From Neoconidiobolus thromboides FSU 785 (taxonomy: Eukaryota; Fungi; Entomophthoromycota), in assembly GCA_025603075.1 (NCBI GenBank), contig MU626427.1, forward strand, positions 1 to 42,136: a stretch of 42,136 nt of DNA, written 5' to 3'. The position numbers and the translations under genes were made by a program. The notes under the pieces were generated by a model that searched no databases, was not told the DNA's origin, and saw nothing but the letters and a program-made list of their open reading frames with translations. The stretch's first letter is position 1. The number at the start of each line of letters is the position of its first letter. Shown one piece after another: positions 6,233 to 33,341 of this stretch.

Positions 6233-7282
6233 ATGATAAATTCGGATAACAGTGACAGGCAAGATGTTTTAGATAAACCTACTAGACAACGTAAGGTGCT
6301 CGATATTAAAACCAAAAAGAGTATAATTGAATTGTCAAAACAAGGTTTAAGTCATCAAACAATTGCCACCAGGTATAGTATTGGAAGGAGTACAGTTACC
6401 AAGATTTTGTTAAATAAGGAGCATATCCTTGAAAATAGTATCGAACACTTCCATGACTTTCGCAAAAGGATAAGAAAGACAGTGTATGATGGTTTAGAGA
6501 CCGAGCTCTTTAAATGGTGTACTGAAGGCGTTTCTATTCCTAATCATAAGGTTTATTATTCCTGCAGTAATCGAAATGAAAAGCGTAACGTTCTTAATCC
6601 CAACATTATTAATGTTCGTGAAGGTGTTGATAAAGATATGATCTTATGGAAGGCCGAGTGTCTAGCTAAAGACATGAATTTGAATGATTTTGTTGCTAAT
6701 AATACTTGGCTTGGGAAGTTTAAAAGGAAGTATTACCTTAACTTCAAAACTGCTAAAAGGCGAACCTACTTAAATGACGGCTTTTCTATTAAGGAATTGA
6801 CTAAGGAATGTAACCCTATTGCTTATCGTCCACCCACCGAAATTCAATCACGTAAAGTTTTAGTTAAAAGCAATGTGCCTCAAAATGTGGACTTATTTAA
6901 TTTATCTAAAGATTATAAAACTAAAAATAGTTCCTTCAGTGTTAGCAATTTATTAAACCCAGCCATTCCTGTATTGAAAGTAGGAGCTTCTAATGATAAA
7001 GTAGATGATGCGAGTGAGGTATCGCCTCCTGAATCTGGAACTTCTTCAGCTCAATCAGCTCCTGTCTTTGAACCTAAACATAGTCCCGAGGTTATTATTC
7101 ATACTGCTTTAATAGAGAAGCGCAAATTAGGGGGCTTAGTAGATAATGAACATAGCCAAAAAAGAAAACCTATTCATAGAACCGAGGAAGACTTTCTTAA
7201 AAACTTTTTCCCAACAAATGTAGAATCAAAATCAAAGTCTGTAGTAACTCCTGAAGCTAAAAATAGAAACATGTTTTATTAA
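6233..7282 (+). CDS. CENP-B/pogo-derived double-HTH DNA-binding protein without DDE domain (copy 1, 349 aa)
   Basis: HTH1 LSHQTIATRYSIGRSTVTKIL; HTH2 LETELFKWCT...ILWKAECLAKDMNLNDFVANNTWLGKFKRKY; VKSNVP motif; low-complexity tail; no N.DETG or other DDE motif; TATAAATA at 6176-6183. Confidence 0.85.
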   Translation: MINSDNSDRQDVLDKPTRQRKVLDIKTKKSIIELSKQGLSHQTIATRYSIGRSTVTKILLNKEHILENSIEHFHDFRKRIRKTVYDGLETELFKWCTEGVSIPNHKVYYSCSNRNEKRNVLNPNIINVREGVDKDMILWKAECLAKDMNLNDFVANNTWLGKFKRKYYLNFKTAKRRTYLNDGFSIKELTKECNPIAYRPPTEIQSRKVLVKSNVPQNVDLFNLSKDYKTKNSSFSVSNLLNPAIPVLKVGASNDKVDDASEVSPPESGTSSAQSAPVFEPKHSPEVIIHTALIEKRKLGGLVDNEHSQKRKPIHRTEEDFLKNFFPTNVESKSKSVVTPEAKNRNMFY

Positions 7283-8231
7283 TTATCTTACTATTTTATG
7301 GTCAAAATCTCTAACAATAAAATAATAATATTTTTTTAATGTGTTTTGATATTAACTTTTAAAATTTCTTAGCTTAACATGCTAAATAAAAAGCCACAAT
7401 TATTCACTAAAAAATTTATTTTTCCACTTGTGAATTAAGTGCTACGAAAGCCTCGGAAAACTCGGAAAATATCACCGTATAGAACATAGCTATCACATTT
7501 GGGACGTTTATTTTATGTTCTATTAAAATTTCTTTTTAAAATTCCTTATGGTAATAAGAATGTTAAATATTCTATGTAAAGGATTAAATAGCAAAGATTT
7601 GATATCTTAATATTATTCATATCAATATTGTTAAAAAATCTTTACAATAGCTATAAATAACTTATTAATTGGTTGTAGTATAAAGTAAGTAAGTACAACG
7701 TTTTAATTTATTTAATTTAGTAAATGACAAATATCAAATTACTATCTGTAATAATAGAAGAAGCCATAATATTGTATAAAAATAAATGTTACTATTCATT
7801 AACTTTATGAATTTAAAATAGCACCATTTTTTTATTGCCAAGTTTTAACTCAAACCCTTCTAAAAGAAAAGTATTCTAATAACTGAAGTCATCACATTGT
7901 TTTCCTTTGCCTAAATTAGATAATACAGTTTATTCATATTGAATAATTGATGGTTTAGATTATAGAGGTTAATATATGGTGCAGATAAAGTAAGCTCATA
8001 ATTTTTAGAAATTACAATATATTCACCATTTTTTTGTCGTTTGTGATTAAAATTTTATTAGTAAGCTAAACTCTATTGTCACATTTGAACTCTAGCAACA
8101 GCAGGCACTACGTTATTATAACGTTTCTATAAATTTATAAATTTAGTTTTATACTATATTTTATACTATAACCTATAAAGTCTATTTTTCGAGCTTTGTT
8201 TATATAAAATAGTAATTCTTAAAAAGGCGAC

Positions 8232-8271
8232 TTTTAAAAATAGAAAAGTGATGAAACTAAAAAACACCCTC
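8232..8271 (+). mobile_element. MITE 3'-end fragment
   Basis: TTTTAAAAATAGAAAAGTGATGAAACTAAAAAACACCCTC matches the right half of the ~98-bp family consensus. Confidence 0.55.
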
Positions 8272-10397
8272 ATTTTATTTAACCTTGAAAAATGAAAATT
8301 AACAATAATTGTTATTTTTCATCTGGCATTTTATTACACAGTAATAAATTTGTACTTGTAATAAAGTAAAGCATTTGCTAGGATCATTTATTGAAATATA
8401 TACTACTATAACATATTCTTTCTTAGTTTTATAGTTCAAATAGTAGTTTAATTTAATAATTAAATTAAAGTTAATATCATTTGCTGATTACTTAATACTA
8501 ACTAAATTATTATGATATCGATGGAATCCCTATTCTTTTTAATAAGGAACAAATTTTTATAGTATTAAATATAAATAAAAACAAAATTTAATGATATGCA
8601 ATAGCCTTAAAAACATTAAATTATAAACTCTATTAGAAATTATTAAGTCATGTACTGGCTTAAATAAAATTAGATTTTAACCTAATTTTTTATATTCACT
8701 TAATTATAAAAATAGTTTAATTCAAATATATTTTTAACAGTAACACACCTGCCTGTAAGGGTCCAAGATTTTTTTAAAGGCACTTTATGTAATATTACTA
8801 TAAACATATCAAATTTAAGATTAAAATCGTTATAATAATGCCTTACTTTTTTAATAAAATAATACTTTTAATTATAATAAAAGTGGTTATATTATTTTTA
8901 TTCGACACTCTATACTATTTCACTCTTTATACATTTTTTGCCTATCATATATGAGAGTGTATTGTCGGTGACTTTTAACATTACCGTTATTCGCTATAAT
9001 AACTTATTTATAAAATTCATAAATCTGATAGATTACTAGATTACATAAATATTTTCAACATTGTATAATATATTGGATCTAATATTTCAAGCATTTTAAT
9101 GTTTACATCTTACTGGAATGTTAAATAACTATTCTTTGTTGATACTAGAAAGCTTTCACTTAGATGCTTTGGGTATATTTTACTTAAAATAAGTAAAGTG
9201 AAAACTTTAATTTATTAATTGTATTCTTCATTGTGTATTTGTTTAATAGCAATTATAAATACATGATTGTTACTTAAACACTTGGTTAAATAATTGTTAT
9301 ATAACAAAATTCTTTTGGCTTATACTTAAAAAGGATAAAACAAAATAAAATAAATTATTTCCGTATGCGGATTTTTTAAAAACTTAGAATTCAACATTTC
9401 TAATACTCTGTAATCCGCAATTAATACTTGTTTTTAACATTCTTCTCTTTTTCCAGCTTATTAGATCCTCATAAAAAAATAGAAACTCTATCTCCAATAA
9501 CATCAATATAAAGTTATTAAAAATAAAATTTTTGCCACCCAAAAAAACACCCTGCATGATAACTACTTAAATTTACACTGGATAACTATTCATTTAAGAG
9601 AATTTCATAATTCCAAGCCTTAAATTTACTAAACAATATAAATTATTAATATAAAAGCTATCAGTATATAAAGCACATTTGAACTTAAACAGTTGTAATA
9701 CATTTCGATATCAAGCTTTATGTTTTTTCGGGTAAAAACGGCTTCTAAATAAGAATTTTGTATTACAGGAATAGCATTTATAATTTAAAAATAGCAAAAA
9801 ATTCATAGAATTATCATCACATCGAATAATAGAATTTTTGATTTATTATTTTGAAATTATATCCAACATGATTACAGGTTGTAAAATTATTTAAAGCCAA
9901 TGATATTAAAGTAAAGGAAGTATCTAAATTTGTACTTGTGATTTTTACCTCTAAGTAACAACTAACGTCTTTTTCTATTCAAATAGATTTTCTAAAGCTT
10001 TCGAAATACAATCGTCACATACCTTTATTTATTGTAATGCGGATATTTATAGCATCGAAAACATTTAATCTAAAAGATATACCCAGATTTACATTTTATT
10101 TTAAATAAAGCATCACCAGAAAACGTGAGGTCACTTAAATGGTAGAAACATTTTAGTCTAGTAAACAGTGATTGGTAATTGTAGAATAGATTTTTTTACC
10201 ATTGAATTAAAAAGATGCGTAGATTCTAAATTAAGAACTAATTTATTTCAAAATAACCATTTTTATAGCTACAAAACAGCTAAGTTCCACAAGATTTATT
10301 ACATTTATTGCTCATTTCCATTGGTATCACCATAGTTCCATTTCAAAATTATATAAACGCATCAAAATACAAAATACTCATAAATAATTAATTTAAG

Positions 10398-11162
10398 ATG
10401 AATTCAACTGATAATATGATAAACAAGGGGGAGAAAACGAGGAATCGCAAGGTGGTAAACCTTAATGTTAAAAGAGCCATTATTCAACTTGGAGAAGAAG
10501 GTTTAAGTCATAAAGCTATAGCTGAGAGGTTTGAAATAGGAAGAAGTACTGTTACCAAAATATTGCTACGTAAAGAAATTATCTTAAAGAGCGATTCAAA
10601 TGAAAATAGTATAATAGAATGTAATAAACCAAGGATATTAAATGAACTCGAATCATTGTTATTTCAATGGTGTACTGGTGAAGGTGAAATCAAATCAGAC
10701 GGAGCCATTTATATCAATAAAAATGTTACTCGTAAATCTATACTCAACAAAGCTAAAGATATAGCTAATGACATGAACTTATCAAACTTCCCGGCTAGTT
10801 TATCATGGTTCAAGGGTTTTGTTGGTAGATACAATATTGTTTTACCAACAAAACAAAAAAGTATTCTAGTTGTTAAAAGTAACGTCCCTGAAGATTATGT
10901 TTTGGGAGGCAAAATAAACTCAAGTATCCCTTTAAGTGTTAGTACACCTCAAGAATATCATTCGATTGCTTCCAGCTTTCCTATGATGTCTAGCGCTTTT
11001 CAAAACTATTCAGAGATTAGTTATAATATTCCTATGAGACCTATTGTAAGTTTTGATTCAAGGCCTAACAACCCATATGGAAATTTTCGCCCTAATGACT
11101 ATGGACTAAATCGTTATAGGGAAAACTCTAGTCATTCTTCAGATTACATTTACTTTCACTAA
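10398..11162 (+). CDS. CENP-B/pogo-derived double-HTH protein without DDE (copy 2, 254 aa)
   Basis: LSHKAIAERFEIGRSTVTKIL; LESLLFQWCT; ILNKAKDIANDMNLSNFPASLSWFKGF; VVKSNVPE; S/P/N/Y-rich tail; TATATAAA at 10350-10357. Confidence 0.85.
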   Translation: MNSTDNMINKGEKTRNRKVVNLNVKRAIIQLGEEGLSHKAIAERFEIGRSTVTKILLRKEIILKSDSNENSIIECNKPRILNELESLLFQWCTGEGEIKSDGAIYINKNVTRKSILNKAKDIANDMNLSNFPASLSWFKGFVGRYNIVLPTKQKSILVVKSNVPEDYVLGGKINSSIPLSVSTPQEYHSIASSFPMMSSAFQNYSEISYNIPMRPIVSFDSRPNNPYGNFRPNDYGLNRYRENSSHSSDYIYFH

Positions 11163-11703
11163 TGTAGCCTTAGATATATTTATTTCATTTTCGATAATTT
11201 TGATGTAGTTTAATAGCAAATAAATAACTTTTCAGTTTTAATGCATTTATTTCTATTTTCTCTGTAGTTCAAACTAAGTACTTATTCTATATTAGTTCAT
11301 AATATTTCACAAAATATATTGTTTGTTCCTTAAATATGATGCTTTGTCATTTTAATATAATCAATTTATAAAATAGGAAATGTGAATATTTATAAATTTG
11401 TATTTCCGGAAAATAGATAAGCACGAATATTTTTATTGATGTGTTCATTTTATAACTAAAACGTGATTTTATATAAACAGTCATTTCGTTTTGTTTATTC
11501 TTATTTAGTTTGTAATAACAAAGTATTGATAACTAATATAATATATAAAAATGTATTTTTTGATTTCATTTTCTGTCCATTTCTAAGCACTATTAACTAG
11601 AAAAATTATTAATAGAGTTTTTAAAAGAAAAAGACATGGCTAAATATATTATTTAATTTATCCTATACATTTTTTAAATTATGAAGAAAAATTAAGCAGG
11701 TTT

Positions 11704-12072: not shown

Positions 12073-12186
12073 TTACTGAATTTAATGTGTAAATTTTTAT
12101 TTTATTGAATAAAATACTGTAGATTTATACCTTTCAAGGGAAGGAAAATTATTGATGTGATGACAAAAAAAACTATGTTAATGTAT

Positions 12187-12285
12187 GAGGATCTATTTTT
12201 GTATTTGAGAATTTTACTAACAATTTTTCCACTTAAATAGTGCTTAAAAAATGGAAAAAGTAATGAAGTCAAAAAAAACATCCTC
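12187..12285 (+). mobile_element. ~98-bp MITE, full length
   Basis: GAGGATC...CATCCTC termini, family core; flanked by a perfect GTAT/GTAT duplication. Confidence 0.85.
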
Positions 12286-12741
12286 GTATTATTTTTTTAA
12301 CTTTTTATTAATATTTTAACAAATTACATAATAAAAACCTCTAAAAATTAGATATTAATTATTTTGCTTTCTAGTTGTTTTATTTATGTCATTGATATTG
12401 TAATTATTAACTTATTACATGTAATAAATAAAACTAGCTCATATTAAATACAATATACAAATTTTTGATACTTTTAGATCTTTAAAATTTAATTAAACTT
12501 CAAAATATTTTAATATGAATATATCAGATTTTATCATGAAATTTTTAAAATGCTCTATACATTTAAAATAACCACCTATCTATAAGCTGCTCGTTTTTAC
12601 TACTTTAAGTCATTTAATAGTAACATCGTTATTTCTTCTAATGCTTTCTTCTTTAGGTTATACCTGAATCGATTTGTATAAAGTAAAATTAAAAGTTCTC
12701 AGCATAATTTGCTTGTATTAACAGTGAAAGTTTTCTAATAT

Positions 12742-14011: not shown

Positions 14012-14752
14012 TTAGTGGTGGTCAATGAATAGACCCTTTGAGGAATAGGGGATATAATTTGATGTATTATTATCATATCCATTGGTATTAAACTCATTAC
14101 TATTATATAAATAAGAGGAAGAAGAGCTGTTAATAACATTACTATATTCTAAAGCTAAGGAGTCATAAACTAGAGAGTTATAGTAACTTATAAAATGAGA
14201 GTTAAAATCCTTTTCCAATTGTATTTGCGAGCTAATTGGAAAAAAGAGGTTATCTGGCACATTGCTCCTCACAATATTATTACATAACAACTGTTGTTTA
14301 TCAGTATTATTATCAGCTAAATTACGAGACTCATCGATTTGAATCTTCAAATTATGTTTTATAAAAAAATAATCTATCCATGAAGGCCCTGCTATTATAT
14401 TTTTCAAATCTAACTGTTTGATTAATTGCTGTGCTTTCTCCAACACATCATGGCGGTTTAAAGTTGACTTTGATTGTAATTTTTTGGCTTTACTACTCAC
14501 TTGAGTATACCATAAAAGCAAATGATCTTCTAACGTGCTTTCTGCATGTGAAGATTTAAATTGTTTTTTTACTTCATAGGATTGAATGATCTTACTCCTT
14601 TGATTTATTATTTTACTTACAGTGCTCCTCCCGATTCCAAATATATTGGCTATCTTTTGATGAGAGAAGCCTTGCTCTCTTATCTGGATTATCTCCTTTT
14701 TACGATCTAAACTTATATAGTTACGAACTCTTTTATTTGGTTTTAATAACAT
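14012..14752 (-). CDS. CENP-B/pogo-derived double-HTH protein without DDE (copy 3, about 246 aa)
   Basis: FSHQKIANIFGIGRSTVSKII; LEDHLLLWYT; VLEKAQQLIKQLDL...PSWIDYF; IVRSNVPD. Start moved from 14848 to ATG 14752 because paralogs start at that depth and TATATAAAGG lies at 14812-14803, between the two ATGs. Confidence 0.8.
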   Translation of the reverse strand: MLLKPNKRVRNYISLDRKKEIIQIREQGFSHQKIANIFGIGRSTVSKIINQRSKIIQSYEVKKQFKSSHAESTLEDHLLLWYTQVSSKAKKLQSKSTLNRHDVLEKAQQLIKQLDLKNIIAGPSWIDYFFIKHNLKIQIDESRNLADNNTDKQQLLCNNIVRSNVPDNLFFPISSQIQLEKDFNSHFISYYNSLVYDSLALEYSNVINSSSSSYLYNSNEFNTNGYDNNTSNYIPYSSKGLFIDHH

Positions 14753-15674
14753 TTGAAAGCACTTGTATTTTTTTTTTTTAAAAACTAGGACTTTTTTATC
14801 AACCTTTATATATTTGAAAACTCGAGGTTGTTCCAGGTTTATTATCATATCAAAAATTTCTATTTTTTAAGCAAATATCAAAAAGAGTAAATAATATTCT
14901 CGGAAAATCTTAACGACAAAAATACTGAGAAGGGGAAAATATAATAAATGACTATAATAATTAGAGTAACAAGTTATATAATTGCAAAATCATGAAGGTA
15001 TATATTCGTGGTGATACAATTATATAACATTACCAGTTATAAAAGCAATACCTTAAAAAGTAAAAATCATATCTCAATTTCTAGTTCCGCCGAATATTTA
15101 AGCTTTTATTTAATTAGAGCAAACTATAATTTGTATCAATATCATATAAAATGATCAGCCATTTATAATACACTGTTTTATAAAATAGTTGCGTATGTCA
15201 GTGATTACAAATAACATAACTAAATTAGTAAAAAGCTTTATAATATTCATTTTTGTAAACCGTATCCTGGTTACAATTATAATTTTTATTTGCTTTGTTT
15301 AAATGTTAAACTAGTTTGACCTTTACATTTACAATTATACCTTAGATATCGAAGCATTTATCCTTATTTGGTCTTTAATATAATATTAAATGACTTCTTG
15401 TTCTTCCCGTTAACTCACATATTTATATCTTGTGATTATTTAATTTTTAGTTTACTTTTAAACTATAAGTCGTGTATAGCAATTTGTAAAAATTTATGAA
15501 GCTGATTAATTAATTAATTAATACTTTGATAATCCTTAAAATATCCACATATAGTAAAAACGTTTCAATTGACTTGAATTTACAGATATTCTATTGTAAA
15601 ATTAACTGCATATTTAATTGTTATTCTTTATATTATACCTCAAAAATAAAATCATCTATGAGCTAAAAAGAGAT

Positions 15675-15772: not shown

Positions 15773-17823
15773 ATATAAATAAAACCATATCAATTTATCA
15801 ATTGTTTTATGTTATTTAAGGAATAAAATTTTGAAATAATACATTGAAGTTTTGAAATAGTCTTTTTATCTAAGCTTAGTATGTTTGGCTTAATCAGTTT
15901 GGTAAAGCGCTTTTTGACTAAACTATTGAAATTTAGAAGAACACATTATATTTATAGATTAAAAATATAAGAAAGAAGCACTAAGCAAAGGCAAAAAATA
16001 CAGAGATTTTATGTTATTGAAGAGCTTATTTTTGATCTATTGAAGATTTGACTACCTTTACTTTTTAGTCTCATTATAAAGCTTAAAATAAAGTTTTCAG
16101 ACCCAAAATTGGAATTTTTTATCTTTAAAATAATGTGCAAACCACGTGTATAGCAAATTTGGTAAATGACTAATTTTAAATTCCCTATTCTGTATTTAAA
16201 TTTATTGAATAAGGAAAAGCATAATAAAAGTTTGTAACATATTATTATACTAACATTAGATGAGACGATAATGGTTGATCTAATAAATAGTGAACTTTTT
16301 TTAAAGCTATGATACATTAAGATAATTATTATACGGGCGGATACAATATTAAACCAGTATTAGAAGATATAATCCATAACTCTAACAAGCAAGCAAGCAA
16401 AATTACATTTTATTAAAAACACTTGTTCATTTATTTTATTTATTAAAGTTACAATCGAAATTTGATAAGCTATATATAATTCAAATCAAGTATTATATAT
16501 TAACATAACTTTTATTATAGCAACTTTATTTAAGTTAAAATCAGTAGGAATCGAACCAAAGATAATAATGGCTAGAACTCATAAATTAGTACTAAAGTCG
16601 TAAATATTACAAATTAAGTTGAGATACAACTTTTGATTATAGTAGTATAATAAAATGCAGATTAGAAATGTGAAATAGAAGCAATTTAAAGTTAAGAATT
16701 GGAATTTTATAATATTTGACAAAAAGCAAGTATCTAGATTATAGAATAAAAATAAAAGTACTATGTATAAGTGAAATTATCAAATAACATTATAAGTACC
16801 ATAATAGATAGCAGTAGTTTTTTTTGTAACACCCAACTAAATAACAATAGATAATGGGGTTTTTAGTCAAAGAGTTTTTAATTATATCTTAAGTCATTTT
16901 AATCTTAGCCTGTATTTAGATCAATATGTAAGTTTCAAATAATTTATAACTTATAAATTAATTTATTGCAACATAGCTTTCTAGGTCACATTTGGTTAGT
17001 TTTTGGACAATATTTTTATCAATTTAAATAGCATCTCCTTGTTTTGGTAAACTGAAAAAAGGCTTTCTTAAATACTGAGAAGGGAAATACCTTAAATAGG
17101 TAATAGTTTAATAAAAATCCATAATTAGTTTTTTTTAATAGATACAAAAAAATCCGCATTTAGATTATATTTGTTATGAAAAATCTGTATAGAACACTAA
17201 ATATAAGTGAAATTACTAATAAGCTATGAAAAAAATCAAAAAGTTCTAAAAATTCAACAGTTTTAATTAAAAAGACATGTGGTTTTTTTACATAAATTAT
17301 ATATATGTGCAAAAGTTCGCTTAAAGAGTTTTGAGTTAATTAAATTGGCCATTTTTAAAGTATGAAGGAGTTATATAAATAAAGTCTTACGGAAATCCTA
17401 ATATCATCAAAAGCTGAAACTTTTATTTCTATTCTAAAAACTTATATATACATTTGATGCTTTAAGAATAATTACAAAACAAGTATAAAACTTGATACTC
17501 AAAGTCTGTTTGCTTTATATTAGTTATAAAAAGCTGAAATTTAGAAAAAAAAGTTTACAATAATTTATTAAAAATATATATGAAGTATTAAAAAGTATTC
17601 AATAAATACAAAATTATATTAGTAGTAGCAATAAAAAATAAAGAACATTTTTTAATAAAAAGCTGAGAATATAAACAAGGTTCAAAATTTAATTATATAA
17701 TAGGGTATTATATTTTAAATAAAAATAACAGCTTTTACACATATCATGAGTTTACTATAATACCGTAATATATATTCAAATAAATTAGTAATAAATAAAT
17801 TAATTTAAAAATAAACACAATAT

Positions 17824-18015: not shown

Positions 18016-18165
18016 AATTAAAAAATACTGAAAATATAAAATTAATTATATTTTATTATTATAAAAAAACAAGAAAAATGTCATTTTGGCCCAGTTTTAG
18101 CCTTGGTCAAATAATTTTTAAAAAAATAAGTTAATTAATAGTTTTAAAACTATGCCTATTTATAT

Positions 18166-18264
18166 GGAGATGTATTTTTGTGTTTAAGAGTTTTACTAAC
18201 AATTTTCCCACTCAAATAGCGCTTAAGAGATAGAAAAAGTGATGAAGCCAAAAAAAACACTCCT
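18166..18264 (+). mobile_element. ~98-bp MITE, full length
   Basis: GGAGATG...CACTCCT; flanks ATAT/GTAT. Confidence 0.85.
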
Positions 18265-19139: not shown

Positions 19140-19868
19140 TCATATATATTGAGTATAAAAGGCTTCATAAGATAGGCTATTGATAGAAGAAATAGGGCTT
19201 TGAGTATAGGTATTTGACATATAATCAAAATAATTTGGAAAAATTCCAGAAGCTAAACTATCTGAAGAGTAGATTTGATTTAGATTATAATCATATAAAG
19301 AGAAATCCAGATTAGAGCCATTCATGTTGTCTAAACTCAAATTGTTTTCAGCGAATGAGCGTGAATCTAAATACAGAGTATTTGAGGTATTACTTAACAG
19401 TGTAGAATCCGCTTCCTCGTTTTTGTTAATCCTTAATTTAAACTTCCTTAAAAATCTCTTAATCCATTTCGAATCGATATCAGAACTACCCAACTTTAAA
19501 CTACCAGCAATCTCATTAGCCTTGTTAACAACACACTTTGAAGTTATGTTCGATTTGATCAAGTTAACACTACTTAATTCAATATTCTGACCTTCTGTAC
19601 ACCACAAGTATAACAGGTTCTCCAATTTCTCGTCTTGATTCTTTTTAAAACATTTACGAGGGTCATATTTTAATATCTCATGGTTTAATATTTCATCCTT
19701 CCTTAATATTATTTTAGTGATCGTGCTTCTAGCAACATTGAACTTTTCAGCCAGACTCTTGTGAGTTAATCCACTTTCTGCTAGCTTCACTATGGTTTTT
19801 TTCGTATGAATATTTAAAACATTACGGTGCTTTCTCGCTTTTCTTTGAATTAGCTTGTTTGATCTCAT
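19140..19868 (-). CDS. CENP-B/pogo-derived double-HTH protein without DDE (copy 4, 242 aa)
   Basis: The track start 19892 is TTG; the first ATG is 19868 (MRSNKLIQRK). LTHKSLAEKFNVARSTITKII; DPRKC; LENLLYLWCTEGQNI; KWIKRFLRKF; KSNVP degenerate or absent; TATATAAATA at 19913-19904. Confidence 0.85.
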   Translation of the reverse strand: MRSNKLIQRKARKHRNVLNIHTKKTIVKLAESGLTHKSLAEKFNVARSTITKIILRKDEILNHEILKYDPRKCFKKNQDEKLENLLYLWCTEGQNIELSSVNLIKSNITSKCVVNKANEIAGSLKLGSSDIDSKWIKRFLRKFKLRINKNEEADSTLLSNTSNTLYLDSRSFAENNLSLDNMNGSNLDFSLYDYNLNQIYSSDSLASGIFPNYFDYMSNTYTQSPISSINSLSYEAFYTQYI

Positions 19869-20398: not shown

Positions 20399-20497
20399 GG
20401 GAGTGTTTTTTTTGACTTCATTACTTTTTCCATCTTTTAAGCGCTATTTGAGTGGAAAAATTATTAGTAAAATTCTTAAATACAAAAATACATCCCC
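20399..20497 (-). mobile_element. ~98-bp MITE, full length
   Basis: GGGAGTG...CATCCCC; perfect non-palindromic ATTT/ATTT duplication. Confidence 0.9.
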
Positions 20498-21121: not shown

Positions 21122-21170
21122 GATTATAATATATTTGATTATAATATATTTGATTATAATATATTTGATT
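21122..21170. repeat. Tandem repeat (GATTATAATATATTT) x3.3
   Basis: Three perfect 15-bp units plus GATT. Confidence 0.85.
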
Positions 21171-23512: not shown

Positions 23513-24619
23513 ATATGGAGTTCACTTAATACATAATCTGGTTAGGGAAGTTTCATAGAGAAAATACAGGAGTATAAATTGATTGCAACTTATCTTAAAA
23601 TCTCACGAACTGCAATAGATTTACAATGTAACAACTTTTTCGCTAAACTTCTGGTACTATGAAGCGTAATATAAAATGAACATTTGGTGCCTTATTATTA
23701 ATAACATAAACAGGTTTATCAATATACGATTTGGGGTGATTTTGGTTCATCTAAATTTTATACTTTGTTTGAGTGAAAGCTATTAATAGTTAAATAATCT
23801 TTTAATTCTAATCATATATTTGAAAACTGCTAGACTACAAAAGAATCAATATTAAAAAATAAGATGCTAAATAAATGGTTTAAAGCTGCTACTAGATTTG
23901 TGTCATTATTTTGGAATTGATTTATTTAGGAATTACAATTAGTGATATAATGAATTAGTTATTTATAAACTTGCACTAGTGTAGAAGTTCAATATATTCG
24001 ATATTAATTTTACACATAGCAAAGTTAAATAATGGATATTCAAACTGTGAATTAATGGTTAGTTAATTAATTTATGTTAATATAATTTTTTTTAGTTATG
24101 GCTGAGTACTCAAATTATAATAAATTCTAACAGTTTATTATGTATTCAATACATAACCCCAAATATAATATAGATTGATAGATCCATTAAATAAAAAATA
24201 GCCTTTTAATGTATATAATAATTATTTATAAGTGTTATATTAGATAAAAAATTAGTATTTGAAATACACCTTGAAGCTATTTATTAAATTTAGTAAGCTT
24301 ACAGTATGCATATAATGAACTATGATAAATTTGGTAATTTTAAAAATAAATCCATTTAATAGCAGTTTAATATATTTTGAAATTCTATTCATTTCAAACT
24401 TCTTATTATAATATCATTTATTTAAATAAAAGAATATAATTAATAGAATGCCTAAAGTAATTGTTCTTTAAAATTAAAAGTAATAAAGTGATATCTACAG
24501 CTAAATTTATAGCTATTCATTCTATAATAACTAAACTATTATGAAAACGTCAATATGAAGCTATTTGTTGGCTATAAAATAAAAACGAACATAAATCTTT
24601 AACACAAACATGAAGTATT

Positions 24620-25294
24620 ATGAACTCGGAAAACTACAACACATCAAGAAAAAAGAGAAAGGTCTTAAATATACATATCAAAAAAGAAATCGTAAGGCTA
24701 GCAGAAGAAGGAGCAACCCATAAGGATTTAGCTGAAATGTATGATATTGGAAGGAGTACAGTTACTAAAATAATACTAAGGAAAGATGAAATATTGAACT
24801 ATGAAATATTAGAAAATGATCCACGTAAATGCTTTAGAAAAAATAAAGACGAGAAATTGGAATCTATATTATATACTTGGTGTACAGAAGGCCAAAATAT
24901 TGATTTTAATAATTTTAGCTTTGTTAGGGAAAACATAGAAATTACTGATATAGCATCTAAAGCTATCTCTCTCGCCAATGAGCTAAATATTAATTTAGAC
25001 CACGACCTCAATTGGGCTAAGAAATTTTTAAGAAAATTCAAGCTTAAGTTAAAGAAGCATAATAAAAATTCGGAACTTGTTGTTGGAAGTAACGTACCTG
25101 AAAATTTCAACTTGAACTTAGAAACGCCCATTTCGTGCGTTAATATTGTTAATTCTTTTGATACTTATCAAAACTTTTACAATTATAGCTATGAAACTCA
25201 AACCAACATTTATCCGAAACACAACCCTATATATGAAGACAACTCGGATGTCTATTATCAAAATCCTTATATTTATATGCATACTTCAAAATAA
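24620..25294 (+). CDS. CENP-B/pogo-derived double-HTH protein without DDE (copy 5, 224 aa)
   Basis: ATHKDLAEMYDIGRSTVTKII; DPRKC; LESILYTWCTEGQNI; VVGSNVPE; Y/N-rich tail; TATAAAA at 24573-24579. Confidence 0.85.
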   Translation: MNSENYNTSRKKRKVLNIHIKKEIVRLAEEGATHKDLAEMYDIGRSTVTKIILRKDEILNYEILENDPRKCFRKNKDEKLESILYTWCTEGQNIDFNNFSFVRENIEITDIASKAISLANELNINLDHDLNWAKKFLRKFKLKLKKHNKNSELVVGSNVPENFNLNLETPISCVNIVNSFDTYQNFYNYSYETQTNIYPKHNPIYEDNSDVYYQNPYIYMHTSK

Positions 25295-26092
25295 ACATGA
25301 CATCTCTCTGCTTATTTAGTATTCTATTCAATTTGAAGTTTTTTCTAGTTATATATTTTAGTCATTTTAATTATTTTAAAAAAGGTCACATTAACCTTTG
25401 ACTAGGATGTAGTTTAAAGTATTATAATATAATAGAATTCAAAGTAATGCTATTTAATTAACAAGCGCTGCTTTCTATCTTTCTAGTGGAAAATTACGTA
25501 CTGTCACATAATATTTTATATTTACTGAAGTATAGGAATTTTGCTATTTTTGCTGTATACATTTTATTTAGATCTTCAGTGGAATATGCTTTTAAGTATT
25601 TTAATTAAACAAAAATAAACAAAACGGGTAATATATATAAACTGTGGCATAATAAAAGAGTTTGGTTCGTGTAGAAAACTAAAACATAATGTAAACTTCT
25701 ATCTTTTTTATATGTTTTTAATAGTGCTATAAATTTTGTAATTTAATTTATGTAAATATGAATATTTTTGAGAACATAAATTATTACAATAAGCAAAAAT
25801 CAGAAGTTTATTAAGTACAAGAGTTTAACTTTGAAAATTTGAAATATATCGTTATTCATATAAATCAAGCTAACATTAATTGTTAATACTAATGTTATCT
25901 AATGATAGTTTATGTGAACAAAAACTCTGGATAGGTGTAATCAATATATGGCTTGAGTCTGGAATTATACATTAAAGATCGAAAGGAGAATAAAAATATC
26001 CTATATTTAACTACTGAATTTATAAAATAAAATCATGTCATGATAATTATGAATAGTGCTTTGATGACAAGTTATAGAATGGCGCACTATAT

Positions 26093-26191
26093 GAGGGTGT
26101 TTTTTTTGACTTCATTACTTTTTCCATTTTTTAAGCACTATTTGAGAGGAAAATTTATTAGCAAAATTCTTAAACACAAAAATACATTCCC
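26093..26191 (-). mobile_element. ~98-bp MITE, full length
   Basis: GAGGGTG...CATTCCC; flanks ATAT/ATAT. Confidence 0.9.
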
Positions 26192-27114
26192 ATATTCTTT
26201 TTAGTAATGAACGATATAAATAATGATCTTAAATATAGCTTTTTAAAAAGAATCAAAGTAAAACTACGGCAAAAAAGTTTGCAAACTAATACTTTTTAAA
26301 CAGATTCTAATAGTTGATTTGATTTATTCCCTCAAGAAAAGCTCGACTAGTCAATATTACTATGATATTTGTTAACTAATACTTTTAATAGGAGCCGGAT
26401 AGATACAACTTTCTAAGTATATTAAGCTTTTGAAAAAAGCGATTTATGCGTCCTTTCTTACTTATATTTCTTGTAAATAACTTTAAAAAGGCCCGGGAAT
26501 ATTTTCTGTAAGGTCTTAAACGAAAACCTCTTGGATATTGGTTACACTAGTATCTATATATGAGAGCCTTATTGGATATCAATCCAAGCAAAGGTATTCA
26601 AATTAATTTAAAAAAAATCATGAGTTGAATCTAATTTAATTTAACTAAATATATAATCAACACTTTAGAATGGGCATTTTTATTATAACTATTGTGTATA
26701 GTTTTTACATTTTTTTATTTACCTAGGCTCCTTTAGGCTTTAAAAGATACTTAGCTTTAATATTATAAACATCAATCTTTAATCTATGATATAAGTTAGA
26801 AGCGTAAATTTTCAAAATTTAAAACAGCTTAGTTACATTCAAAAAATTCAAAAGAGGGACCAATGATTTATTTAGGTAGGCCATAAGTATATTTGGTACG
26901 ATTTAAACTAAATATAATATATGAACAAACTCCCATACGCTTTATATGTAAAGTTTTAAACTATCAGAGTATTACATTTTATATTTGATTATATTGCTTC
27001 CGTATTAGTAAAAAGACATATGTTTTACATACTCTTCCATATCAATTCAAGGTGTTTGAAGGATCAAGGATTTAAAGTATAAACAGCAGTATGTATTCAA
27101 CAACCATTTTAAGT

Positions 27115-27899
27115 ATGTCAAAAAAAACAGCAAAAAAGAAAAAGAGGGCTTATATTTGCTTGGGAAAAAAGGAAAGATTCATATACATGAGCAGTCAAGC
27201 CATTCCTCATAAGCATGTTGAAAATAGGCTTAGTACTATTTGAAGCACTGTTATTAAAATAATAAACCAGGAAAAGTTTTTTATTAGCATGGTTATAAGT
27301 AAAAAAGCTCAAATATTTGAGAGGAAACCATATTAAAAAACCAATTGTTATTATTATATACCAAAATAGAACATGAAATAGAACAATCAATTTTGAAGCA
27401 AGAGATCCATTGTGAATATGTATTAGATAGCACTGATGAAATAACAAAAGAGTTAAATTTGGGATATTTAATTATTATCCCGAATCGGATGCATAGTTTT
27501 GAAAAAATATCTTGTGATAATCTATGCTCCAAAGAAATGTTGAACTCGCCTTCCATTAATATACTTAAAAGTAAGGTACTAGATGGGTAGTAGCTGCCTA
27601 TTATCAATAAACGTATATAATATAGCCAAGCGTCATCTTTTGCGTTGTTAACTAATATTGATGAAGAAAGTTTCAATAGCTTTGGAATTAATAAGCTTAT
27701 TCAAATATTTTTAAAACATAGCTTGCATATGCCCTTGATGAAAATGAGCTTGAAGGCGGTATTGAAAATAGCATGTGCCCCCAAAACTGTAATTATTATG
27801 AGCTGCAATAAGACCAAAATATTGGCTACATATATTGAAATAGTGGCTCAAATCTTTAATACTTACAATTTTATGTTTAAAAAGCTTAAATATGTATAA
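27115..27899 (+). pseudogene. Pseudogenised seventh CENP-B-like double-HTH paralog (closest to copy 3)
   Basis: ATG 27115: MSKKTAKKKRAYICLGKKERFIYMSSQAIPHKHVENRLSTI*STVIKIINQ aligns gap-free to copy 3 RVRNYISLDRKKEIIQIREQGFSHQKIANIFGIGRSTVSKIINQ. TGA at 27241; one-base frameshift near 27330; then LKNQLLLLYTKI...VLDSTDEITKELNLGYLIIIPNRMHSF (cf. LEDHLLLWYTQV...VLEKAQQLIKQLDLKNIIAGPSWIDYF) and ILKSKVLDG (cf. IVRSNVPD). Stops at 27588, 27591 and 27618. Explains the track ORFs 27345-27590 and 27645-27899. Confidence 0.85.
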
Positions 27900-28199
27900 A
27901 GCGGTTATTCAATGTAAAATGTATTAATTGTAGTCTAAGCATGAGTATAAAGATAGAAGTTTAAAAAGGACAATATAGTAATGGTATAGGAGATTTCAGT
28001 TAATATAATGTGATCTACATAAATATAATTACACATGAATGTTTTATTACTTTAAATATTATCTCAATTTCAATTAGAACTTATAAAATACATTTAAATA
28101 CTTATTTTTTAAGTACATAGGTAATAATATTATAATAAGCTACTTTCCAGTATGAGTTTTAAAACATTTTGTATATCTATAAAAACTACTTTTTAAAAG

Positions 28200-28800
28200 C
28201 GACAAGCTTTTTTGAGGGTCCTAAATAAGGACTTCCCATATCATTCCCTTTTATTGCAATTATATTGGAAACTTTCCCTAACTACTTTAATGTCTCATAC
28301 CAGGTCGCAATCCTTTATGTCACTTTTTTAGATGAGTTTGTGCTGCTAAATTCTAAGCTGATCCAATCAAAAATATTGCTCCTTGTTAAATCAATGCTCG
28401 CTTGCTCTCATCTTGCTTTATAGTAATCTCGTTCTCTGACTTTGGCATTATATCTATCTTTTATTTAGTAAAATCTATCCTCTGAGCAAATCAATTATAC
28501 CCATCTTACCTTTTCACTTGAAGATCTGAATAAAGATTTACCATCATCTTACCTATTTATGATATTATAAATTTCTTAAGTTAGTGAAGTTTTTTAGACA
28601 ATTAACATATTGCGGACTGAAAACCTTTACGTCAATCGCTTTCAAATACTCGCTTGACTTGTATCAGATTGTTATTTGGATTTTACTTTATAAAGCATTT
28701 GTCTTTCAGGCTTAAGCTTTCAAAAAAGGCTTTATCCTAATATTTGGAATCTTATAAAGAGGAGCCTATTGCCTGTGTAATTACTAGGCAATTCTGATAT
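28200..28800 (-). pseudogene. Possible highly decayed gag-like relic (boundaries approximate)
   Basis: Locally higher GC; IATWYETLK*LG at about 28311-28276, followed in another frame by IWEVL. Several stops and frameshifts. Confidence 0.2.
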
Positions 28801-29352
28801 TAAATATTATATATAAAAATTCCTTTATTGTATTTTAGCTCATACTTTATTTATAGAAGTACAAAGCTTTTATCGCCAAGAGGATAATTGACTCGCATTT
28901 AAAATAGCTGACAAATTTGTTATTTATAGTACAGCATATTATCATTTCTAATGACAAAACTATCATAAAGCTATTTTTATAGTTATTATATAAACTAGTA
29001 CCATGAAACAAATTCATAAAAGAATAAAATCCTTTTAAACTTTTTCTATTTAACTTGTAATTAAACACTAGGACTTATTTTTTTAACATTTACACAGCAA
29101 TAAAGCTGTAAATTTGAAACAATATGAAAATTCAACTATATTATATAATGCAATGAATTTGAGGTAGTTTTTAAAAAGCTATTTATCTTGAATTGGTTTT
29201 CAAAGTATAGTTACAAACATACATGTTAAACCCTCATGGTCTAAGGTAGGTTATTCGCTTTTTGCCAACCTTAATGATTTCCAGGGGTTCTTCTATTTTC
29301 GATTTTTTTTTTGAGTAAATAAAATTCACTGTTTTGTTTTCTGACAAAATAT

Positions 29353-29449
29353 GGGGATGTGTTTTTTTGTTTAAAAATTTTACTAACAATCTTTCCACTC
29401 AAATAGCGCTTAAAAATGGAAAAATAATGAAACTAAAAAAAACAGTCCC
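29353..29449 (+). mobile_element. ~98-bp MITE, full length
   Basis: GGGGATG...CAGTCCC; flanks ATAT/ATAT. Confidence 0.9.
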
Positions 29450-31622
29450 ATATGCTAAAAAAATGTATAGTCATAATTTGTTTTGGTATATATACTTCAA
29501 GTAGAATTACAAATAGAACATATGATAACTTCTCATGTTATATATTTAGTAAGTAGCGTTGGTAGGAATAAGAACTATTTTTGATTAAATTAAATTAACT
29601 CCGAGAATTTTAATCTAGAATACTTAATATGTTTAAAATTCGCTTAATAAGTAAAAATAATAAACTATAAAACTTTAAAGGTATTTCCGGTATTAGAAAT
29701 GTATATGTAAATTATGGATTAATATTGTATAGGCTTAGACAGGAATAATTAATAGCATAATGATATATTAATTCCTTTGTCATTGTACATGATATAGGAA
29801 CTATAGATTCTGCGATTATAATACAATAATTTATGTTTTTTCAAAGTTTTAATATAAATAATAACGAAATTATCTATACATCATTCTAGAAAAATGAAAT
29901 GAACGACTTTATAAAAAATTTATACTAGTTAAAGATAATGTATTGGTAATAAGCTTAAATATCATTACATGTTTGATAAACTTATCAGTCTCATTTACAC
30001 ATTGAATGTTTATAAGATATTATAAAGAAAAGCTATAAATAAGCTATTCGGATATTGATTTTTTAATCCGAATCTGAATAAAATTTCCATAACATAGAGC
30101 GCTATAATAAAAAAACTACAAGGCAAAAAAAGCTTTGAAATATCCATAAGGATACTATCAGTAATTTACATTTGCCATAATCAATTGTCCTTTCTCTAGG
30201 GCGTTTTAAATTTGGTTTTTAGTTTATAGCGTACAAATATTGTGTTATTCATAACTTGTTTCATAAATACAAAAAAGGCAAAAAGCCTAAGAACAATACG
30301 AAATTCAATCATTTACACATCAATGCGCAAATTTTTGCTACACAAAATTTAGTTTATTTTAGTCTAGATTACTAAGATTTGTTATATCAGGCAAATAAGT
30401 TTTAAGTTTGAAAAAGTCCAGTCTATTAGATCAATAATTCATAATAATGAACTTATTTTATTATAAATAAAATAGAAAAATATTTCTCTGAACTAAATAT
30501 AGCCCTATTAACGATAGTATTTATCTTTTCTAGCATCTTTTTTGTAATTTATAATATTTGACAAAAAAATGAAATATAATTAATTAACAGTAATTATATT
30601 TATTCAGCTTATTTTTCGATATAGTTGATATAAAATTCGAATCTGCCAATTATTTTCTAGGCATAATATAATATTTTAAATTGTATTAAGTTAGAACTAT
30701 ATCATTAGTTTTAATAAATTGCTGCTCTAAGCCACAAAGTTTTATTACAATCAGCCCTTAATTCACATTTCTAAAGTATAAATATATTTCTGTTATCTTT
30801 TTAAGTACTATTAATAGCATAGTATATATCATATGTTATGTTACTCTATTTAAAATTACCAAAATAAATATATTACTTATTTTAGTATAACTTCCCATGT
30901 TAAGAAATTTTTTGATTAAGCACTCTCCAACAAAAATCAGATAGATTTTGATAAGTATTTACCTTACAGTTAAGCTGGAAAATATTAACACACATTCATT
31001 GCTACTTTTTATTGTGATTTGAAAGCTAAATATTCTTCTGAAGTTAAACTTTTACCATTACATTAAAAAAGTTTGTTTGTACGTTTTACTTTAAATTAAT
31101 GGATTTTTTGAGTGATTGATGGTATTTAAGCTATCTATTGTTTCTCTTTCTTTGTTATTGTATGATGTTAATAGCTTTGGACATCAAATACTAATATTTT
31201 AAATAGTTTAAGTGTCATCAATCAATTAAAAAATATATTAATTTACAGTAAAGCATACAAATAAACTATTTAAAAAAGAGACAAACTATTGTTAATTTAC
31301 AAATAAGAGTTTGGCTTTAAAGAACAATTGGTTTAGAAACTATGATAAAAGATCAACAATGTGGTCAATAGTTTCTGTCTAGACTGTATATTTTTTGATT
31401 TAAAGCCGTTATATTTACTTATATATAAGACATCTGATACTATCCAATAGATAAGAATTCCAAAAACAAGATCAGTATAAATAGCCTCTTCTCTTTATCA
31501 CATACATCTCAAATTAAGCTAACTTGATTTTACAACTTTTATTTTTAGTTCAATTTATGTTTATAAATAATTTTTATTTATCATTTATTCTCAGGCCTCT
31601 TACAGTGTAATTTTTAATATAT

Positions 31623-31717
31623 GGGGATGTGTTTTTTGTTTAAGGATTTTACTAACAATCTTTCCACTTAAATAGCGCTTAAAAAATAGAAAATAATGAA
31701 ATCAAAAAAACATCTCC
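31623..31717 (+). mobile_element. MITE, full length (95 bp)
   Basis: GGGGATG...CATCTCC; flanks ATAT/ATAT. Confidence 0.9.
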
Positions 31718-32687
31718 ATATGTTATTTACTTCGATTCAAAACGCCAAAAATGACGTCTTATTATAACGTTATGATCTTGAAGTGCTATTTAATATATCC
31801 CTAAATTATTATTTTTATACGCTTTATAAAGCTCGTAATAATAAACGACGTTGTTAAGGGAAAACTATAACGGTAAACAAACTTGGAAGTAAGAGTTATC
31901 CTTAAATGCGGCTACAAGTAAAATGAACAAACAATGACTTTTTTAATGTTTCTTGGTATCTATACACTTTGTTGTTTAGAGCCAACTCCTTAAGATATAA
32001 GTATGTTTTTTTGAAAACATTGATTGCTGGTCTTTGGTATAAATTCTATAGGTACTAAAATATCTTTGTGACCTATTTAAACTAGGGTGTACTTTTTGGT
32101 ACTAGATCATGGAGTTATAAAATGCATTTCAATACAACAGCCAAATTTGATTTTTAATTAATGGCACTTTTACTCTACTGATTCTTTGAATAAAGTACAG
32201 GCTTTCAAATATAACATTTTTTAGTTATAAATATAATTAAATTATTATTATTCTATTAGGGCTTTTTATATATAATTACAGATAGCTAATTCTCAAAATA
32301 TTTGTTAGTAGTGCTAGTAGTGCAATCTGTTAATGGCTATTTTTAAATGTAGCAAAAGTCAAGTCATAATGTATATTAGAATAGATTATATAATTTTGGT
32401 AGATTATTGGGGATATTGCTATTTTTAGTATTTACACAAGGCTTTAGATAACTACATAAAAGATACCAGAGCGAAATTCAAATGACTAAACTTATTAAAT
32501 AAGGTTTATTAAAGAAAATTTTATTCATTACATATGCAATAAAATAAGTATATATTCGCTCAAATTATGTTCTGGATTTAACCAAATCTATCATCGAATA
32601 AGAATAGGAAAAATAGAGTATATATAAAGGAAGATAACCCAACACGCTAAAATTCATAACAAATAACCACATCAAATCAAAAAAATA

Positions 32688-33341
32688 ATGTCTTACAGGA
32701 AACCTAGAAAAGTATTAAATATACATACGAAAAAAAAAATAATCGAACTAGCGGATACGGGTTTAAGTCATTTGAGTATAAGCAAAATTTTCGAAGTTGG
32801 AAGAAGTACTGTTACTAAAATTTTGCTAAGGAAGAATGTCATTTTAAGGAATGAAATACTGGATTGTGATCCACGTAAGTGTTTAAAGGATAGTACACTA
32901 AATGATTTAGAAGGAAAATTGTATAAATGGTGTACAGTTGGTATTCAAATAGATTCAACCGGGACTACCTTTATAAAAGAAGGAATTACGACCGATGATA
33001 TACTTACTAAAGCAAACGAACTCATGAATGGGTTGAAACTCACGAACTTTGCTCCAGATACAAAATGGATTACTAGGTTTTGTAGAAAATACAAACTCAA
33101 GAAAAATAATTCTAAGAAAGATAAGGTTTTATTAGTTAAGAGTAATGTACCAGAAGGCTACGGTTTAAACGATAATTCTAACGAAGCTACATCTATTACT
33201 GAACAATATCCACAAGATTTTAGTTACGATATATTTTCTAGCTTTAACAACATAAACCAAAACATGCCATATTATCCAGATTCTTACCTTTGCTTGTCTA
33301 ACAGCTCTCCACTTTCAGATAATTTTTATTACACTTTTTAA
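32688..33341 (+). CDS. CENP-B/pogo-derived double-HTH protein without DDE (copy 6, 217 aa)
   Basis: LSHLSISKIFEVGRSTVTKIL; DPRKC; LEGKLYKWCT; ILTKANELMNGLKLTNFAPDTKWITRFCRKY; LVKSNVPE; TATATAAAGG at 32621-32630. Confidence 0.85.
   Translation: MSYRKPRKVLNIHTKKKIIELADTGLSHLSISKIFEVGRSTVTKILLRKNVILRNEILDCDPRKCLKDSTLNDLEGKLYKWCTVGIQIDSTGTTFIKEGITTDDILTKANELMNGLKLTNFAPDTKWITRFCRKYKLKKNNSKKDKVLLVKSNVPEGYGLNDNSNEATSITEQYPQDFSYDIFSSFNNINQNMPYYPDSYLCLSNSSPLSDNFYYTF

Follow-up and report, generated by a model that had tools for sequence, protein, structure and literature searches.

Contig MU626427.1 of Neoconidiobolus thromboides FSU 785 raises the question of whether a cluster of genes with transposase-like DNA-binding domains still belongs to mobile elements or has been taken over by the host, and to what end. 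The organism is an early-diverging, insect-pathogenic fungus from a poorly studied group. The stretch of DNA analysed here (the window; 42,136 nt) carries six intact intronless ORFs and one decayed copy within 27 kb (Table 1), each intact gene encoding a double helix-turn-helix (HTH1 and HTH2) of the CENP-B/pogo type followed by a disordered tail. All members of the family are annotated as hypothetical proteins. A preliminary interpretation based on the letters of the window (the sequence-only reading) had proposed a single domestication of a pogo-like gene with loss of its catalytic DDE domain, followed by tandem expansion into an array of transcription factors. We infer that the genes probably belong to a lineage-restricted family of domesticated regulators that bind specific DNA sequences.

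Table 1. Genes, decayed copy and upstream TATA boxes of the cluster (contig MU626427.1)
Feature	Position	Strand	Description
g1	6233..7282	+	ORF, 349 aa; KSNVP, then long tail
g2	10398..11162	+	ORF, 254 aa; double HTH, KSNVP, disordered tail
g3	14012..14752 (ORF open to 14848)	-	246 aa from ATG at 14752; WYT and RSNVP variants
g4	19140..19868 (ORF to 19892)	-	242 aa from ATG at 19868; ARSTITKI helix variant, SNTS
g5	24620..25294	+	ORF, 224 aa; double HTH, GSNVP, tail
Probable pseudogene	about 27091..27680	+	TGA at Arg of RST helix, at least one frameshift
g6	32688..33341	+	ORF, 217 aa; double HTH, KSNVP, tail
TATAAA box, g1	6176..6181	+	57 nt before start; regex scan
TATA box, g2	10352-10357	+	regex scan
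TATA box, g3	14805-14810	-	regex scan
TATA box, g4	19906-19911	-	regex scan
TATA box, g5	24573-24578	+	regex scan
TATA box, g6	32623-32628	+	regex scan

Reading of the ORFs placed the six intact genes exactly where they had first been proposed. For g3 and g4, translation probably begins at the ATGs given in Table 1, since the proteins read from them match the annotated P0008 (246 aa) and P0004 (242 aa), respectively. The gaps between successive units measured 1.8–4.8 kb, and their DNA is AT-rich as described (21–30% GC). Genes g4 and g5 share an inverted match of 275 nt at 75%. As for the seventh copy, the codon for Arg in the RST recognition helix has become TGA, and HTH2 lacks its conserved Trp; it matches g3 in tblastn (E 7e-5 and 1e-3) and the family profile in two colinear fragments (E 0.32 and 0.16). 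Taken with its frameshift, these features agree with its earlier designation as a pseudogene, and it is a probable, heavily decayed relic of the family.

The Pfam domain CENP-B_N (PF04218) was found above its gathering cut-off of 21.2 bits in all six proteins (24.6–33.6 bits; g1 27.1, g5 29.3 and g6 24.6), whereas HTH_Tnp_Tc5 (PF03221; cut-off 22.2 bits) exceeded its own only in g1, g2 and g6 (23.7, 27.0 and 26.7 bits), fell below it in g3 and g4 (22.0 and 16.9 bits) and had no listed match in g5. Of the two domains that had been expected, the first was thus detected in all six genes and the second above its cut-off in half of them. It should be noted that g5 matches the family profile with an E of 6e-70, and that this profile aligns with the human CENP-B structure 1HLV over residues 4–129, covering both domains, domain 2 included (E 8.9e-13). 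In the AlphaFold model of g2, seven helices (3+1+3) exceed a pLDDT of 90 and the tail stays below 50; among PDB entries, Foldseek again ranked CENP-B first (1hlv_A; E 2.1e-5, 31% identity, probability 1.00, TM by target 0.61). Profile and structural matches together bear out an origin in a DNA-binding domain of the pogo/CENP-B type.

The motifs that had been picked out in the sequence-only reading, namely the [G/A]RST[V/I][T/S]KI helix of HTH1, the LE..L..W[C/Y]T segment and, in five of the six intact copies, (K/R/G)SNVP, are all present in the sequences; g4 has SNTS in place of the last. In g1, HTH2 carries an insertion and a long linker precedes KSNVP. The tails are divergent, as claimed, and disordered, with 15% Asn, 13.5% Ser and, in most members, about 12–19% aromatic residues; they are mildly acidic, acidic residues exceeding basic ones in most members.

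The absence of the catalytic domain, on which the proposal depends, withstood all searches. In Pfam, no DDE family reached E≤1 in the six proteins, and tblastn and HMM searches with the DDE halves of ten true pogo transposases revealed no DDE relic in the window or at two sister loci (best E 0.09). Nor is such a part added to g1–g4 by a spliced downstream exon, their RNA contigs being colinear and unspliced. We considered whether SNVP might be what remains of the first DDE motif and ruled this out by position, because SNVP lies about 15 residues after HTH2 and DDE_1 starts about 65 residues after it. SNVP aligns with the conserved post-HTH2 linker of true pogo transposases (GEAASVD-like), and by its sequence it may, suggestively, descend from that linker. 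Similar motifs (RSNIS or KSNYP) occur in two proteins from outside the family.

Short DDE-less ORFs with CENP-B_N/Tc5 domains are common in eukaryotic proteomes and many of them are transposon fragments, so the genes might be truncated, DNA-binding-only remnants of pogo elements, either decaying or acting as dominant-negative repressors of transposition; that one copy in the window is dead fits such a view. Against it, no TIRs or TA duplications were found around the genes in the window, in agreement with the sequence-only reading, and the copies share no flanks and carry no DDE relics. Each copy is moreover unique and, with dS saturated, old. In the 90% clustering every annotated member stands alone and lies on one contig, and family representatives are at most 50% identical to one another; many dispersed near-identical copies, which non-autonomous transposon derivatives would have left, were not seen among the annotated members.

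The only long inverted repeats in the window are copies of an unrelated 98-bp MITE, of which the intergenic DNA holds 19, and once these were masked no similarity remained between the flanks of the gene copies. Identical 4-bp flanks accompany 12 of 17 MITE copies (mostly ATAT, also GTAT, AAAT, ATTT and AGAC), which fits a Sola2-like MITE and not a relative of pogo. The possibility that the repeats are pogo-type MITEs, and thereby the ancestral target of the proteins, was rejected on the grounds of these 4-bp, rather than TA, duplications. They were likewise rejected as TIRs of gene-carrying elements: their orientation around the genes is inconsistent, none bracket g1 or g2, and the one inverted pair that brackets g4 does so by chance.

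Transcription is clear for g1, g2 and g4 and weak for g3. The RNA contig of g1 (6288–7339; word depth 653) is colinear and has an A-run as a loose end, which places polyadenylation at about 7339, 57 nt beyond the stop codon. Unspliced contigs cover g2 (10287–11278) and, in three runs, g4 (19027–19864), and a weak one covers g3 (14051–14734; depth 5). The mRNAs end about 60–115 nt after the stops, with no joints at the genes. Discrete and abundant mRNAs set against silent intergenic DNA are not what would be expected of pogo remnants. The depths of the contigs differ widely among the four members, depth being a poor measure of expression. From 24400 to 33500, a region comprising g5, the pseudogene and g6, 8% of the sampled words were present in an RNA run.

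Differences between strains, taken from the RNA contigs, amount to 15 synonymous and 3 non-synonymous changes in the DNA-binding half, compared with 4 and 10, respectively, in the tails (Fisher p 0.003). In addition, RNA run X6 (organism C) contains g2 transcripts with about 3–5% nucleotide differences, against which the DNA-binding half of g2 has a pN/pS of 0.026. Purifying selection acts strongly on the DNA-binding half, which again speaks against remnants, and the tails evolve fast. Between paralogues, dN/dS in the DNA-binding half is 0.17–0.46, values that are only loose upper bounds given the saturation of dS (undefined, or at least 1.5), and the tails could not be aligned; selection was therefore judged from the strain differences and not from this pairwise comparison. 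Some members may be decaying, as g4 has lost SNVP and its strain differences comprise 5 non-synonymous changes against 1 synonymous, and this preponderance of non-synonymous changes is a further point on the side of pogo remnants. Unique flanks, single-member clusters, unspliced transcription and purifying selection support the view that the genes of the window are host genes, not transposon copies.

Searches for further members depended strongly on the method. Word-indexed protein searches, started from a single member or from a 20-sequence alignment, returned almost nothing beyond the window's own proteins, and it was an exhaustive profile search that proved informative. The family has 22 or more divergent members, spread over at least eight scaffolds of N. 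thromboides and mostly in tandem clusters, plus two relatives from external samples. In the tree, g4 is sister to P0010 and g5, and g6 groups with g2, g4 and g5; g1 and g3 are not closest to these four, g3 being a long lone branch and the most divergent member. P0010, which is encoded on another scaffold, nests within the clade of the window. The nearest relative of g1 is the external P0026, with 36% identity and a common insertion in HTH2; a g1-like protein from ERR10900026 has this insertion as well as KSNVP, at 36% identity. The family-specific motif and the tail persist over deep branches and also in an external organism, which transposon debris would hardly achieve, and the interpretation of the genes as truncated pogo remnants, already largely refuted, appears to us highly improbable.

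The evolutionary scenario was only partly upheld. Largely local duplication is supported, but the seven units do not constitute a self-contained array: they belong to a family of 22 or more genes, and P0010 falls inside their clade. As for one domestication, the pogo origin and the loss of DDE stand, and the monophyly of the family is weakly supported (79/87), one long-branch outgroup falling within it. With these provisos, an ancestral pogo-type transposase would have lost its DDE part and kept the CENP-B_N-type HTH1 and the Tc5-type HTH2; the (K/R)SNVP motif and the disordered tail would have been gained, or retained from the transposase linker; and the gene would then have given rise, for the most part through tandem and inverted duplications nearby and now and then through dispersal, to the present family of at least 22 members, of which the window holds six live copies and one dead. 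The proteins would bind DNA sequence-specifically through their two recognition helices, and the paralogues probably recognise similar sites, because these helices are nearly invariant. They would then probably regulate transcription or chromatin, with an output that varies with the tail and with the expression of each gene.

New regulators have arisen repeatedly from the DNA-binding domains of transposases. CENP-B, encoded by a single gene, has retained a central region derived from DDE as well as a dimerisation domain at its C-terminus; Abp1, Cbh1 and Cbh2 of S. pombe retain a DDE_1-derived region. To our knowledge, the characterised fungal cases (Abp1/Cbh1/Cbh2 and yeast Pdc2) all keep a relic of the catalytic domain and number one to few genes. 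The present family has in common with CENP-B (1HLV) the bipartite HTH1 and HTH2 fold of pogo-transposase origin, but in N. thromboides nothing except a short motif and a disordered tail comes after the domain, and the gene has been multiplied about 22-fold. With Abp1/Cbh1/Cbh2 it shares the two HTH domains and the status of pogo-derived fungal host genes; the match of the family profile with Abp1 (1IUF) is at E 0.07, and the lack of any sign of common descent points to an independent domestication. The nearest matches of the profile outside the family are arthropod and nematode proteins, e.g. Penaeus XP_027234068 and Ditylenchus KAI1717696, which likewise combine CENP-B_N and HTH_Tnp_Tc5 without DDE_1, but have 2–6 HTH pairs per polypeptide and neither the GRSTVTKI helix nor SNVP.

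The suggestion that the architecture was undescribed did not hold, since co-option of DNA-binding modules, CENPB-type expansions and DDE-less proteins with CENP-B_N and Tc5 domains are already known, short proteins of the last kind being common in databases. In Drosophila, DNA-binding modules of Tc1/mariner transposases have been co-opted (cag, CG4570 and toy; five genes, 43 species; PMC13548663), and as in our family the catalytic domain was lost, the module kept and the products are conserved, expressed host genes under purifying selection; these were described singly and in animals, whereas here a fungus has about 22 tandem-clustered paralogues with an SNVP motif. In Metazoa, independent, species-restricted bursts of pogo-derived CENPB-type proteins have been classed as transcription factors (PMC10027918), in animals only and often with BTB/POZ or integrase domains attached. 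A full-text literature search found no description of the family or of fungal arrays of DDE-less CENP-B-type genes. The family is thus an uncharacterised fungal instance of a kind of event already known from animals, in which module co-option and CENPB-type expansions have been described. It leaves the known mechanism of domestication unchanged, and offers a tractable case of a transposon module becoming a gene-regulatory family outside animals and plants, as well as a candidate set of lineage-specific regulators for poorly studied fungi.

What the proteins do at their sites can be read in two ways. They could be binders of chromatin, centromeres or transposons, like CENP-B or Abp1/Cbh1/Cbh2, that organise heterochromatin on repeats and do not control individual genes: the characterised pogo-derived domesticates named in the literature we found are of the chromatin/centromere type, among solved structures CENP-B in complex with its box comes closest, the near-invariance of the recognition helix over about 22 paralogues fits a single repeated target common to all of them, and the gene clusters sit in repeat-rich, gene-poor DNA. 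We nevertheless regard this as unlikely, given that the DDE-derived and dimerisation regions kept by CENP-B and Abp1 are missing and the C-terminal part is predicted to be disordered. Furthermore, the repeat that abounds locally, a Sola2-like MITE with 4-bp duplications, is unrelated to pogo, which leaves the proteins without an ancestral reason to bind it, and 22 diverging tails together with differing contig depths (a poor expression measure) are more typical of regulators. Within the regulator reading that we prefer, the about 22 paralogues may, tentatively, constitute a fungus-specific network of transcription factors built from one pogo DNA-binding domain, which would read much the same DNA word through their almost invariant recognition helix and, at the sites they share, either compete or work together. 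Their outputs would diverge by way of the fast-evolving disordered tails, with the conserved (K/R)SNVP as a docking motif recruiting a common partner. Such a network would be a fungal counterpart of the bursts of transposon-derived transcription factors in animals. A tie to the insect-pathogenic life cycle is conceivable.

Upstream of the genes, a TATA-like box had been placed about 30–60 nt before each start, and TATA[A/T]A was indeed present in all six cases, at -43 to -65. With a background of 0.5 per 100 nt on one strand, about 0.2 boxes per gene would be expected in this interval. The transcript contig of g2 begins upstream of its box, and the boxes therefore remain candidate promoter elements. 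When the k-mers of 15 upstream regions were compared with those of 139 control chunks, only TATA-like words were enriched, none significantly after multiple-test correction; as no other shared motif was found upstream, neither a target nor autoregulation is indicated. The word TGCGGAT occurred four times upstream against 0.94 expected, a count reached in 1 of 100 shuffles.

Neoconidiobolus thromboides is an entomophthoralean, insect-pathogenic fungus, and its DNA in the window ranges from 21 to 35% GC. An ORF scan recovered the six intact genes (g1–g6) claimed by the sequence-only reading; the mechanical starts of g3 and g4 are too early, and annotated ATGs are listed in the table. The motifs it had quoted were seen in the alignment, namely the near-invariant [G/A]RST[V/I][T/S]KI, LE..L..W[C/Y]T, and (K/R/G)SNVP, which five copies have and g4 replaces by SNTS; W...F was seen in HTH2. 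The presumed pseudogene is probably a strongly decayed relic, whose weak colinear traces reach a KSKV remnant (tblastn E 7e-5; family-profile fragments E 0.16–0.32).

Coordinates of features in the window and of related genes elsewhere
Feature	Position	Details
g1	6233-7282 (+)	RNA contig 6288-7339, terminal A-run 57 nt beyond stop
g2	10398-11162 (+)	RNA contig 10287-11278
g3	14012-14752 (-)	Annotated ATG 14752 (246 aa); RNA contig 14051-14734, low depth
g4	19140-19868 (-)	Annotated ATG 19868 (242 aa); RNA contigs cover 19027-19864
g5	24620-25294 (+)	
g6	32688-33341 (+)	
Decayed copy	~27091-27680 (+)	TGA at Arg position of RST; frameshift
Family genes, MU626404.1		Six in 14 kb, one unannotated
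Family genes, MU626464.1		Four, one unannotated
Family genes, singletons		Five
Unannotated intact members, GRSTVTKI helix	L003:3545-4381 (-); L002:14330-15325 (-)	278 aa; 331 aa; absent from gene tables
98-bp MITE, 19 copies	11551-41244, e.g. 12184-12289, 18163-18268, 20395-20508	Also in sister loci L002 and L003
TGCGGAT	9366-9372, 9413-9419, 10038-10044	Three within 700 nt, upstream of g2
TGCGGAT	17152-17158	
X6 contigs	18776-19173	Loose ends at 18871 and 19001
5'-nucleotidase gene	36330-39138	Adjoins g6
5'-nucleotidase copy	L003:13888-16800 (scaffold MU626464.1)	88% identity, protein and DNA
510-aa ORF	2085-3617 (-)	No Pfam match
Similar 300-nt stretches	613-912, 2958-3257	75% identical, 2.3 kb apart
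Tandem repeat	40266-40345	2 x 40 nt, 98%
Tandem repeat	21107-21166	Three overlapping 30-nt copies, 15-nt spacing

The predicted Pfam content was borne out in part: CENP-B_N exceeded the cut-off in all six genes and, as expected, DDE families were absent among their matches even at E≤1, but HTH_Tnp_Tc5 passed only in g1, g2 and g6; it scored marginally in g3 and weakly in g4, and g5 had no listed match. A profile built from the DNA-binding halves of all six genes matched both DNA-binding domains of human CENP-B (1HLV residues 4–129; E 8.9e-13), whereas S. pombe Abp1 was matched at E 0.07 only. RSTVTKI aligns on PSTLSTI of CENP-B; in the model of g2 it is helix 3 of HTH1. That model, predicted by AlphaFold from a 20-member alignment, has helices at 22–33, 38–45 and 49–57, a linker helix at 59–68, and further helices at 79–93, 112–125 and 135–144, mostly at pLDDT >90, with the SNVP segment at ~72–78; all residues beyond ~172 fall below 50. 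Its top PDB match was 1hlv_A (E 2e-5, TM by target 0.61); Pax paired domains came next. The tails contain 15% Asn and 13.5% Ser, with ~12–19% aromatic residues in most members, often terminal, and acidic residues outnumber basic ones in most. The two conserved recognition helices would confer sequence-specific DNA binding; paralogues probably bind similar sites, and their tails, their SNVP motif and the expression particular to each gene may have diversified their outputs. The main rival to such a diversified regulatory array is a chromatin role like that of CENP-B and Abp1.

In ten genuine pogo transposases DDE_1 begins ~65 residues past HTH2, and their DDE halves (tblastn; HMM against all six-frame ORFs) found nothing in the window or the two sister loci (best E 0.09). 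RNA contigs run colinear with the genome, with no joints at g1–g4 of the kind that a spliced downstream DDE exon would leave. As the sequence-only reading had it, the genes have no TIRs or TA duplications; the window's long repeats are 98-bp MITE copies with ~18-nt inverted termini (GGGGATGT...ACATCCCC) and 4-bp target duplications, the flanks being identical in 12 of 17 copies (mostly ATAT, some non-ATAT). As a pogo-type footprint this element was ruled out, 4-bp duplications differing from the TA of pogo. Its density is ~4.5 per 10 kb, with none in the first 11 kb and none around g1 and g2; around g3–g6 its orientation is inconsistent, and the inverted pair bracketing g4 (103 nt, 90%) is made up of two elements, each complete and independent of the other. 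A great many RNA contigs contain this MITE. Once MITEs were masked, no similarity was left among the 1.8-kb flanks of the seven units. Every annotated member is the sole sequence of its 90% cluster, on one contig. That these genes, with their pogo-type double HTH, are transposon fragments is largely excluded.

The RNA signal is not DNA contamination, because intergenic depth is zero. Contig depths of g1 and g3 in one run differ ~100-fold, depth being a poor measure of expression. The TATA-like box described for each gene is present (TATA[A/T]A in 6/6, at -43 to -65; background 0.5 per 100 nt), and also in most members of the two sister clusters; that of g3 falls within the spurious 5' ORF extension. 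The g1 contig start is consistent with its box and the g2 contig starts upstream of its own, so box use is putative. The window has four occurrences of TGCGGAT where 0.94 are expected (four reached in 1/100 shuffles), and none was found upstream of family members other than g2. In X6, an RNA run from organism C, contigs of word depth 420–561 lie on ~130 nt just 3' of the g4 stop and leave its coding region uncovered; they may come from a repeat, or from another transcript of organism C.

Pairwise dN/dS, proposed as a check, was uninformative between paralogues, whose DNA-binding halves share 26–54% identity with saturated dS, whereas strain or species differences taken from RNA contigs were more telling. 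In the comparison of g2 with organism C, 10 changes in the DNA-binding half are synonymous and 1 is not (pN/pS 0.026); in the tail the counts are 3 and 5 (0.42). For g1, g2 and g4 taken together, the synonymous to non-synonymous counts are 15:3 in the DNA-binding half and 4:10 in the tails (Fisher p 0.003). As g4 shows 5 non-synonymous changes against 1 synonymous and lacks SNVP, constraint on this gene may be relaxed.

Searched exhaustively with the profile, 1.84 billion representatives yielded 4399 matches. The GRSTVTKI-type helix occurs in 20 representatives, 18 from N. thromboides, where all named members are labelled "hypothetical protein", and two from unknown samples (Logan ERR10900026, SRR5690348). 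The family comprises at least 22 genes on at least eight scaffolds. Tandem expansion held only partly: g2, g4, g5 and g6 form a clade with P0010, a member from another scaffold (support 90/97); g1 pairs with the external P0026 (36% identity; common HTH2 insertion, long linker and KSNVP), and g3 is a long solitary branch. Cluster labels are clumped on the tree (0/200 shuffles as low), yet not monophyletic; the expansion is therefore old and took place largely by local duplication, with a degree of dispersal. The closest matches outside the family are arthropod and nematode proteins with 2–6 HTH pairs and no DDE, and in the ESM Atlas short DDE-less CENP-B/Tc5 proteins make up many clusters, of which some are commonest in Mucoromycota. 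Repeated domestication of pogo into CENP-B is well known. The sequence-only reading knew of no description of the architecture; a literature search turned up no publication about this fungal family, but species-restricted CENPB-type transcription factor expansions have been published for Metazoa (PMC10027918). The family is a fresh, fungal addition to a known phenomenon and no new kind of event.

The secreted-type 5'-nucleotidase gene beside g6 has a copy in L003 that directly adjoins another HTH-family cluster in the same relative position and orientation; the neighbouring HTH genes, g6 and P0023, are not mutual closest relatives. The pair could reflect the recent duplication of a block, or gene conversion, stopping at the cluster edge. 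The 510-aa ORF contains one of the two similar 300-nt stretches, the other lying 2.3 kb upstream, which suggests that unrelated genes form a tandem pair at the window's left edge, listed separately in the earlier reading as "Fungal_trans-like". Two small tandem repeats are also intergenic.
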